A stretch of 64,000 nucleotides of DNA from positions 930,001-994,000 of the forward strand of contig OU015568.1 of NCBI GenBank assembly GCA_907165135.1. Reading direction: 5' to 3'. Positions within the stretch are counted from its first letter, which is position 1, and every line of letters begins with the position of its first letter. Both the position numbers and the translations under genes were made by a program. Positions 37,699 through 40,026 of this stretch are shown here, piece by piece. The stretch comes from Oikopleura dioica (Eukaryota; Animalia; Chordata). Below the pieces are notes generated by a model, which saw only the letters and a list, made by a program, of their open reading frames with translations, was not told the origin of the DNA and did not search any database.

Positions 37699-40026
37699 TT
37701 ATTCTTCGAGGGTTTTCGTTCTCAAATATCTTTTTTTCTCGAATTTTGGTAATTCGTTATCTTCAAAAAGATCGTAAACTTCATTGATTAATTGATTTCC
37801 TTTTTCAATCATCGCGTTTGAAAAATACTCAAATGATGGCGGCGCCTTTGGACGATGAAATTTCTCAGTTTCTTTTAAACTCTGAAATAAAAGTGACAAT
37901 GATAGATATGGGCTTATGAAAATGTACTTTTTCAAGGCACTGCAATCTTCTTTCTCGATCTGGAACGGCATAATATTTTTGGCTCTCGACGAAATCAAGA
38001 ATTTTCGCCATTTCTCGGGTCGCATTGATTTTTAAGTCTTCGTAGAAAAAGATGTGCATTGGGACCTTATTTTCTTTCTTTTTGCTGATGATTTTTAACA
38101 TAAGATTGTGCCACCAGCCCAAAAATTGTGTCCCCTGTTTAATCCAATCATCTTCTTTGAAAACCGACTCAGAAACACTTGAAGTGTGGCCTTTCCCCTT
38201 TCTTCTTTTGAATTCTGCGATGACTGCATCAAACGGATTGCGGATCAGAAATAAGTATCCTTTTGCGGAGGAAATATTTTTGTCGTCGATGTTGTGAGCT
38301 TTTTGAAAGAGAGTTGTCCCGTCTGTCGGGTCGGTATATTCGCCGAATAATCCGTCTTCGTAAAGTGACTTGTCGTTGTAAATACTTCCGGTATAGATGC
38401 CGGTAGATTTTTCAAGAAGCATTCGGGTCCAACTAAGAAGCTTTTTATTTGTCATTTGCGAGAAAACCTTACGTGTTTCCACTTCCAGCGAATGAAACAA
38501 GCGGGAAAACATCGAATTCGTCTTTCCTCCCAAGTCGTGTTCCGAGGTCACAATTGTCTTCATCTGGCATTTCGAAGTCGAGTATCATTTCTTCGCCAAA
38601 TTTATCCGCGGCTAGTCGTTCAAGGACAACATTCGCGCTCCAAGTCGATGGATTCGAATAAAAGAAGAAATCGGATGTGAACGCCAGCTCTTGAGAAAGA
38701 AGAGAGAGTTGTGTATCAAAATAAGCATCAGTTAGTCGAGATTTGGCAAAGTCTGATATTTCTTGTTCTTCGATAATTTCGGCTTCGGGGTAATATTCGA
38801 CAATATGGGAAGTGAGATTTTTCAAGAAATTATAGTCGGACGGGGGGCTATTTCGGGCTCAATCAGTTGATGATTTTTTATAAAAATAAATAAACATTTA
38901 TTGAAGCCTTTTGCCTGAAAAGTAAAATTGTCTTTCCATTTATTTTCTTCATTCTTTTGACAACCCATTTTACGAAAATGGATGGATCCGCTCGTATATT
39001 CTTAATTTTTGCAACGAGACTCTTCTTGCTTTCCCCAGAATTCAGCTGAATGAAATCGTTTAGATCATATCGCCAATGAAGAGTCGCAAAATGGGTGATA
39101 TTTTTTGAGCTAAGAAATTCTTTCGAAATTTCTTGAATCTTTTTCGATCTTCTAGTGTTTCTGATAATATCGAGGATCATGTCGATAAAGTCGAAATCGT
39201 ACAGTTTGCTCGCTCGAAGACGGTTCTTTGCCAGCTCATTCTGGAGAAAGTATTAACAAGCCTTCTAACACGACGGAAACCTCACCCAATCGATTATGCC
39301 AAATGGTTGTTTGAGCATAACACAGTCAATGTTATCAAATTTCAAAAACTGTTCGGAAATTTCTCGTTGAAAATCTTCTTTTGGCCCGATAAGATCAACC
39401 TTCTCGGTGTCGTTATACGTCGAAAAATCCAAGCCGAAGTAGTTGTAAGTATGCTGGATATATCTGGTGTCTTTCCAGTTTTGATGAGTGTTGAAAATCA
39501 AATCAAAGCGGTTCTCTTTCATGATTGCTTAACTTTTTTTCGTCGAATTATTTCGTAAAAAATTAGCGCAATCCTTTCCCAAACAGCTTTCATGAACATG
39601 AGAAGCGACAGAGATTGACGAGTTTATCAACGGAATATCGAATATTTCTGATGGAGGTAAACGAAATTCGCCCTTTGAAGAAAAGTGCCGGAAAAACGGT
39701 GGGACCCCGATCTTAATAAAATTATAAAACTTGTGCTTTTTCGAGTTTTCGTTCACCTTTCGATCAAGAATCTTTGCAATGATGAGACTTTCCCTAAAGC
39801 CTTGGTACTGATTGTTTGGCCCGTAAATCAAAACAGGAATAAGGATTTTCGTATTTTTCATTTCTCTCGCAAATAATCCGCTCTCTTCATGCTCCAGCAA
39901 AAATTTAATGTGTGGTTGGACAATGTCAGCCTCTTTCCTCTGATTTAAATCGTCTCCAAGGAAGTAGAAAAAGGACCAAGTAATGAATAAAACGAAAAAA
40001 AGTTGGTAAAATATATGAATTTCCAT
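37699..40026 (-). CDS. Fusion: TM anchor, O-fucosyltransferase (POFUT/PF10250-like), WSCD-type sulfotransferase
   Basis: O-FucT-like motifs GPNNQYQGFRESLIIAKILDR..VPPF, LHWRYDLNDF and SQELAFTSDFFFYSNPSTWSANVVLER. ORF 38469-38825 runs from these directly into [12 protein letters not shown]; ORF 37865-38563 is the WSCD domain. Confidence 0.8.

Follow-up and report, generated by a model that had tools for sequence, protein, structure and literature searches.

The sulfation of glycans normally depends on separate glycosyltransferases and sulfotransferases that meet in the Golgi. The protein O-fucosyltransferases POFUT1 (GT65) and POFUT2 (GT68) are soluble enzymes of the endoplasmic reticulum that act on folded EGF and TSR repeats. 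WSCD1 and WSCD2 are Golgi type II sialate 8-O-sulfotransferases, defined by 5'-phosphosulfate-binding (5'-PSB) and 3'-phosphate-binding (3'-PB) motifs; the mouse proteins are type II Golgi proteins, and in WSCD1/2 two WSC domains of carbohydrate-binding type precede the domain that transfers sulfate (Ertunc et al. 2022, PMC9304399). In vertebrates the acceptor of WSCD1/2 is sialic acid. Here we describe a locus on the minus strand of a 64,000-nt stretch of Oikopleura dioica DNA (the window, in whose positions all coordinates are given) that is, in our judgement, probably one gene for one type II protein of the secretory pathway, of about 677 amino acids and with two tandem luminal catalytic domains, a member of a modular family of larvacean type. 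Like WSCD1 and WSCD2, the predicted product would be a type II membrane protein with a C-terminal, luminal sulfotransferase domain of the same clade, dependent on 3'-phosphoadenosine-5'-phosphosulfate (PAPS); unlike them, it has the two WSC domains replaced by a POFUT-like GT-B domain of about 360 residues. The fold of this domain, as modelled in a paralogue, is GT-B with POFUT1 and POFUT2 as its best structural matches (Z 14.7-12.6), and its three collinear conserved motifs are putative counterparts of theirs; it differs from them in that it stays below the threshold of the Pfam family PF10250, is only 8-16% identical to them in sequence, and stands in one protein with a signal anchor and a further catalytic domain.

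The gene model was obtained by reading the minus strand directly and by comparison with homologues. It begins with an ATG at 40026, ends with a TAA at 37701-37699, and consists of seven exons with no stop and no frameshift over 675-678 codons, the borders of intron 2 deciding the number (about 677 amino acids in the joined model, to which all residue numbers refer). An initial annotation of this DNA, made from the sequence alone, had delimited a feature at 37699-40026, and these positions proved to be the start and stop codons of a coherent seven-exon model. The same annotation had claimed that the two domains are fused in frame inside a single exon, in an open reading frame (ORF) at 38469-38825. 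That ORF is present exactly as described (minus strand, 118 amino acids), and the claim of an in-frame fusion holds: within the junction exon (38847-38473), bordered upstream by the acceptor of a GC-AG intron and downstream by a GTAAGG donor following AC, STWSANVVLER leads to GSGNTW without a stop. The stop-free stretch is in fact longer than the ORF, covering 38858-38472 (129 codons). It reads, in a single frame, SPPSDYNFLKNL, then SDFFFYSNPSTWSANVVLER, then the start of the sulfotransferase; FFFYSNPSTWSANVVLER is followed, 44 residues on, by the PAPS loop (GSGNTW), again in one frame and with no stop between them.

The junction is not confined to the window. A POFUT-like tail running into a P-loop in one open frame was also found in four related loci: the metagenome contigs L001 and L003 (45-57% identity), L017 (81-83% identity at the nucleotide level) and L016, which comes from O. 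dioica OKI2018_I69 (OU015568.1, a chromosome record). All four share the phase-2 intron that follows GSGN(T): in L001 and L016 it was seen in the sequence itself, and for L003 and L017 the coordinates of the alignments imply it. P0023, the gene model of O. dioica, is spliced at this position too, which is that of intron 5. For 47 codons of the junction compared with L017, the ratio of nonsynonymous to synonymous substitution rates (dN/dS) is 0.20, at a dS of 0.57. It is 0.10 (dS 0.42) for the POFUT-like exons 4-5 compared with L005, 0.07 (dS about 2.0) for the sulfotransferase exon compared with a tandem paralogue, and 0.15 (dS 1.25) for the linker and P-loop compared with that same paralogue. 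Because both halves lie in the same frame in four loci and the 47 junction codons give a dN/dS of 0.20, the junction exceeds what chance would produce; dS values of 0.4-0.6 with dN/dS of 0.10-0.20 against near relatives mean that the frame has been held through substantial divergence. These substitution rates indicate that the junction is under purifying selection. A further argument comes from topology: the only long hydrophobic stretch of the protein lies right after the start codon (residues 6-23), from which we predict a type II orientation. The fused sulfotransferase half has no anchor downstream of residue 23, while its stand-alone relative P0011 starts with an anchor of its own, and the sulfotransferase half therefore relies on the anchor of the POFUT-like half.

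The identity of the C-terminal half as a WSCD-type sulfotransferase, as initially proposed, was borne out. Window exons were searched singly in Pfam and the databases, and the joined protein was aligned locally to fetched sequences. Exon 6 matches PF00685 (Sulfotransfer_1) above threshold (E 3.3e-8, 33.7 bits, cut-off 22), and word searches with it returned a 174-aa ORF fragment at 81% identity, the O. dioica OKI2018_I69 protein P0023 at 57%, and P0028, a sialate:O-sulfotransferase 2-like protein of the sea cucumber Apostichopus japonicus, at 38% (E 1.8e-21). Aligned to P0028, the joined model matches over residues 423-662 (37% over 241 aa, E 4e-40), collinearly over three exons and across introns 5 and 6. 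GSGNTW, TGIYTGSIYND and a K-x-H motif are conserved between the two proteins, RNPFD standing opposite RDLYG at the 3'-PB position; the window protein thus has GSGNTW at the 5'-PSB, like this WSCD2-like echinoderm protein, and RNPFD at the 3'-PB. No window exon matched a WSC domain in Pfam, searched exon by exon. Residues ~422-677 would accordingly constitute a PAPS-dependent sulfotransferase of the WSCD clade, with GSGNTW as its 5'-PSB loop, QKAH as its candidate base and RNPFD as a 3'-PB-like motif, separated by a linker of some 8 residues from a putative POFUT-like GT-B domain at residues ~55-415 (GPNNQ, HWRYD, S-T-W-S...ER).

The nature of this N-terminal domain was approached through homologues, motifs, profiles and fold. 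Related loci from marine metagenomes and O. dioica are homologous to window exons 1-5 with E values of 1e-10 to 1e-42 (1e-10 to 1e-16 for the window exons against L011 and L009). Three motifs are invariant in the family, GPNNQxQGxRES, AxxHWRYDxxD and SxxFxxSxxSxWS...R, the invariant residues of the third being S62, S68, S71, W73, S74 and R81. All three are kept in the window (GPNNQ, HWRYD and S-T/S-W-S...ER) and are invariant across paralogues that are 30-40% identical overall; from their order and the Pfam register, we take them to be equivalent to the GNQ, HLR (HxR) and S-x-F-S elements of the nucleotide-sugar site of POFUT1. PF10250 itself was reached below its gathering score of 31.5 in two paralogues, L009 (17.2 bits, E 0.004) and L010 (13.1 bits), and L011 had no match to it. 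In L009 the ORF, which holds the second half of the domain, aligns to profile positions 152-323 of 326, and the PF10250 profile therefore ends at the ...ER motif, in agreement with the end of the domain as initially drawn. An AlphaFold model of L011 (1534-2583, residues 15-364), for which misplaced N-half fragments were left out of the family alignment, has a mean pLDDT of 67.8, with values above 85 in its C-terminal half. The best 44 PDB matches of this model in Foldseek are all POFUT1, POFUT2 or FUT8, AtFUT1 following at rank 48. With VIA-align it gave Z 14.7 for CePOFUT2 (root mean square deviation 2.8, 166 residues aligned), 14.0 for POFUT1, 12.6 for human POFUT2, 12.1 for FUT8, 11.8 for NodZ and 10.1 for AtFUT1, compared with 8.9 or less for unrelated GT-B enzymes. 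An Atlas feature search with exon 4 placed PF10250, FUT8 and GT11 clusters on top, which we treat as a lead only, and an Atlas shape search returned O-FucT clusters. Homologues, motifs, profile and fold together therefore place the domain in the GT-B fucosyltransferase superfamily, as a divergent member that comes closest to the protein O-fucosyltransferases; on the modelled fold, its closest relatives are POFUT2 and POFUT1. The initial label of O-fucosyltransferase is consequently retained as regards the GT-B fold and the nearest relatives and given up as regards membership of PF10250: since that family was reached only below threshold, and in paralogues, we call the domain POFUT-like, with a putative donor.

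The POFUT-like module is found in several arrangements: alone, joined to a WSCD-type sulfotransferase, joined to a sulfotransferase of CHST/HNK-1 type, and joined to a beta4-galactosyltransferase. The marine metagenome contig Ga0115100_10711338 (L011, 1492-3615) contains an uninterrupted ORF of 708 codons, lacking only the first exon, in which the module precedes a CHST/HNK-1-type sulfotransferase (Sulfotransfer_2, PF03567, 2.8e-25). L012 likewise combines the module with Sulfotransfer_2, and L014 and L015 are of the same type as L011. In L009 (3620-4633) and L010 (17-2224), one ORF each carries the module and a complete GT7 beta-1,4-galactosyltransferase (PF13733, 1.5e-46; PF02709, 1.6e-16), which makes two glycosyltransferases per chain; L004/L008 and L013 show this arrangement as well. 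These fusions (L011/L012 and L009/L010) resemble the window gene in their module (37-52% identical over exons 1, 4 and 5), in the order of the domains and in the break point, which falls just after the N-x-D/N-F tail; they differ from it in their C-terminal partner, in linker length and in having both domains in one uninterrupted ORF. The closest relatives of the window's module, L002 (1800-1830) and L007 (1870-1895), read ILDFV-stop where the window runs on into the sulfotransferase. They end at the window's junction, and the family's break point therefore corresponds to the natural C-terminal end of the enzyme in its stand-alone form. A short tree (95 columns) joins the window to L002 and L007 at 99/97 support and places the other WSCD-type fusions elsewhere, from which it follows that partners were gained, lost or swapped more than once, the alignment being too short for a count of events. 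Among the sequences compared, the POFUT-like module family seems confined to larvacean-like ones.

The structure of the gene (Table 1) can be followed through its homologues, which share intron positions with it. Its six introns measure 45, 51-60, 45, 67 (GC-AG), 40 and 46 nt. An acceptor-like ttttcag lies 20 nt upstream of the first ATG; motif I is invariant in four homologues, and the A, H, W, R, Y and D of motif II in nine. The only ambiguous borders of the model are those of intron 2, for which three candidates keep the frame (GT-AG of 57 nt, GA-AG of 51 nt and GA-AG of 60 nt), with borders at 39578 or 39584 to 39528, or at 39573 to 39514. L002 and L007 also have a stop-bearing intron at this place and in the same frame, best explained as GC-AG in L002 and GG-AG in L007. 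The GC donor of intron 4 is present in the near relative L005 too, and at the corresponding place in L007 (1530-1612) there is a phase-2 intron of GA-AG type. Exon 7 is 68% identical to L016 11582-11752. With introns of 40-67 nt, among them G[ACG]-AG introns, the predicted gene structure is larvacean-like.

Table 1. Exons and introns of the predicted fusion gene, listed in the direction of transcription
Feature	Position in the window	Strand	Content and remarks
Exon 1	39757..40026	(-)	ATG at 40026; hydrophobic signal anchor (aa 6-23); stem with DIVQPHI; motif I GPNNQYQGFRES...ILDRK
Intron 1	39712..39756	(-)	45 nt, GT-AG; intron at identical position in L007
Exon 2	39579..39711	(-)	IGVPPFF...HESC; 3' border at 39585, 39579 or 39574; homologous to L002, L007 and L009
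Intron 2	39528..39578	(-)	Removes an in-frame TAA (39531-39529)
Exon 3	39286..39527	(-)	KENRFDLIFNTH...PFGIIDW; end of the N-terminal half of the POFUT-like domain
Intron 3	39241..39285	(-)	45 nt, GT-AG; intron at identical position in L007
Exon 4	38915..39240	(-)	Motif II of the POFUT-like domain (ATLHWRYDLND, aa 270-274)
Intron 4	38848..38914	(-)	67 nt, non-canonical GC-AG, phase 2
Exon 5 (junction exon)	38473..38847	(-)	SPPSDY, then motif III SDFFFYSNPSTWSANVVLER (aa 391-401), tail, linker of ~8 aa, NCDLGTRLG...
Intron 5	38433..38472	(-)	40 nt, GT-AG, phase 2, within the T codon of GSGNT
Exon 6	37928..38432	(-)	Core of the WSCD-type sulfotransferase: WTRMLLEKSTGIYTGSIYND, candidate catalytic QKAH (aa 492-495), 3'-PB-like IRNPFD (aa 512-517)
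Intron 6	37882..37927	(-)	46 nt, GT-AG; model collinear with P0028 across the junction
Exon 7	37699..37881	(-)	C-terminal part of the sulfotransferase (SLKETEKFHRPK...); TAA at 37701-37699

If both domains are active, the tethered pair would act in turn on one acceptor in the Golgi: the glycosyltransferase domain would first add a sugar, most likely fucose from GDP-fucose, and the sulfotransferase would next place a sulfate on this sugar or on one beside it. Secreted or matrix glycoproteins, possibly those of the house, would thereby receive sulfated glycans. Such a role in house or matrix glycans is made plausible by a preprint which reports strong expression of WSCD1-like sulfotransferases in the house-producing giant cells of O. 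dioica (bioRxiv 10.64898/2026.03.31.715263).

Several points weigh against the reading of one gene and one bifunctional protein: (i) The donor sugar, the acceptor and the site of sulfation are all ones that we infer. (ii) The PF10250 match that the initial annotation led one to expect is absent, no window exon matching the family at E values up to 1, and PDB profile searches gave no match for any of three exon alignments (exon 1, exon 4, junction exon). (iii) The fold was tested on L011, a paralogue with 37-52% identity to exons 1, 4 and 5 of the window gene, and the N-terminal third of its model is poor. (iv) No sulfotransferase was found downstream of the module in L002 and L007, which stop after ILDF, and the fusion is therefore not universal. 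(v) RNA runs labelled O. dioica gave only 6-8 partial reads each, at 90-95% likeness. (vi) At L016 (7268-11761) the published model g9846, which yields the 253-aa sulfotransferase P0023, takes as its start a Met inside the junction exon.

The assignment of the N-terminal domain has an alternative. Rhamnosyl- and other transferases of plants are also grouped with PF10250, and one fused protein might use another nucleotide sugar in its N-terminal domain, or might carry there a non-catalytic module that binds glycan or substrate and serves in targeting, in replacement of the WSC domains. The failure to reach the PF10250 threshold and the low identity to solved POFUTs would fit this, and the WSC pair ahead of the sulfotransferase domain of WSCD1/2 provides a precedent for an N-terminal targeting module (PMC9304399). 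We nevertheless consider it unlikely that the domain is something other than a fucosyltransferase: the invariance of the three putative site motifs across paralogues 30-40% identical argues that catalysis is retained, the best structural matches are all fucosyltransferases, and the occurrence of the module alone in L002 and L007 fits an enzyme better than a targeting domain.

The last two points raise the question of whether two products are made. Oikopleura uses operons and trans-splicing, and the sulfotransferase could be made alone, from an internal promoter, from a spliced-leader trans-splice site or from a Met inside the junction exon (EEM, FEM); the frame open across the junction would then be what remains of an earlier fusion or of an operon-like organisation. 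The main support for this is the published start of P0023 within the homologous junction exon. The RNA runs, too, gave no read support for the full-length form: none of three bulk RNA libraries contained a read at 95% likeness or more, and a single-cell run gave no reads for this stretch. The partial reads cover 39757-39828 and 37905-38308, which are the most conserved segments, and then continue into unlike sequence; they most likely stem from paralogues or a divergent lineage, and therefore show that some paralogue or divergent-lineage orthologue of both domains is expressed. An apparent RNA joint at 38012-38196 (TC..TC) was rejected as a paralogue artefact, and the RNA data as a whole neither back nor refute the gene model. 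Against separate products stands the anchor, which a sulfotransferase started at an internal Met would lack, whereas P0011 has one and mouse WSCD1/2 are type II proteins (PMC9304399). The linker and the POFUT-like tail, which lie upstream of the Met codons, are moreover kept in frame (dN/dS 0.15-0.20), and relatives carry both domains in uninterrupted ORFs of 708 and 736 codons. As to P0023, collinear POFUT-like exons lie upstream of it in L016 (7268-10075) with no gene model on them, which suggests a truncated gene prediction, and comparison of the two loci indicates that the fusion is probably under-annotated in the O. dioica reference genome. Separate production of the sulfotransferase is thus an improbable account of the locus, and a single fused protein remains the one we prefer. 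L016 was rejected as an orthologue, its identity being only 29-68% and its neighbouring genes different, and was treated as a paralogous locus; a second P-loop suggested there by overlapping alignment segments was likewise rejected, as an alignment overlap around a 420-nt intron.

Two relatives of the gene have a broken or reduced structure. One is the tandem paralogue of the comparisons above, the neighbouring gene on the minus strand at about 36430-33701. It has a similar anchor and a stem with the same DIVQPHI, and immediately ahead of the P-loop it retains MILDCEM, a remnant of the POFUT-like tail. A WSCD-type domain with 76% amino-acid identity to that of the window gene is followed by a Gal-3-O-sulfotransferase domain (PF06990, 5e-14). 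Between the first exon and the MILD frame there is a shift of one base at a run of eight A (36286-36279), which an error in the homopolymer, a true frameshift or an intron that escaped recognition could each explain. By its sequence the neighbour looks like a copy of the fused gene minus the POFUT-like core; anchor, tail and sulfotransferase would therefore once have formed one reading frame. The other is L005, of which positions 633-1186 are 85% identical to window 39260-38651; the match ends in the middle of the junction exon (38651), after ...FFFYSN, with unrelated sequence beyond. The break could stem from a chimeric assembly, from an insertion or from structural variation in this near relative.

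That the gene is silent or decaying, its frame open only through the youth of the copy, is very improbable: the lack of reads at 95% likeness or more in the three bulk libraries, the frame conflict of the neighbour and the break in L005 would suit such a history, but some 677 codons are intact over seven exons with every family-invariant residue kept, dS of 0.4-0.6 at dN/dS of 0.10-0.20 separates the gene from near relatives, and the RNA runs may derive from another lineage or life stage.

The initial annotation knew of no characterised protein with this architecture, and our representative, word, Atlas and literature searches likewise found none, characterised or annotated; its singularity was qualified by the related loci, which combine the same module in various ways. 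Searched against 1.84 billion representatives, the junction exon matched 11 ORF fragments of 78-185 aa and no full-length protein. A word search with an exon-4 profile gave only fragments with no Pfam annotation, and one with the POFUT-like region of L011 had no match among candidates of 389-1239 aa. An Atlas feature search with the 708-aa L011 fusion reached a best score of 0.78, with fucosyltransferase clusters only and no cluster of fused architecture. In the literature we found no paper containing both 'fucosyltransferase domain' and 'sulfotransferase domain', and none that describes a fusion of a fucosyltransferase with a sulfotransferase. Each of the two domains is of a known kind; by these comparisons, the architecture and the modular family appear to be new among the databases and literature searched.

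Two consecutive glycan steps on one chain have a precedent in a known type II Golgi polypeptide, a sulfotransferase-deacetylase, which serves us as a working analogy; its partner domain is a deacetylase, its sulfotransferase belongs to another clade, and homology with the window protein is confined to the sulfotransferase fold. Gene fusions have also been described in the sulfated-fucan synthesis of brown algae, namely FK-GFPP and ST-alpha/beta hydrolase, with the argument that consecutive steps gain in efficiency (Nishitsuji et al. 2019, PMC6418280). Like the window gene, these join enzymes of a fucose and sulfate glycan pathway; unlike it, they have other partners, include no fucosyltransferase-sulfotransferase pair, and belong to an unrelated lineage and to unrelated enzyme families.

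A natural tethered glycosyltransferase-sulfotransferase would offer a compact system in which to study substrate channelling during glycan synthesis, and a candidate tool for the chemo-enzymatic synthesis of sulfated glycans. The modular family, which comprises stand-alone forms as well as fusions with sulfotransferases of two clades or with a GT7 partner, shows clearly how domains are shuffled at a fixed junction in a chordate that evolves fast. It also exposes a systematic gap in annotation: in the O. dioica reference, only the sulfotransferase half has a gene model. More tentatively, we propose that larvaceans possess tethered 'assembly-line' Golgi enzymes, in which a POFUT-like module recombined at a fixed break point with WSCD-type or CHST-type sulfotransferases or beta4GalT, hard-wiring the glycan code of the secreted house. 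The family offers concrete candidates for the enzymes that decorate the glycoproteins of the larvacean house or matrix and, if our reading is true, would represent natural glycosyltransferase-sulfotransferase fusion enzymes, for example for the sulfated fucosylated glycans of the house.

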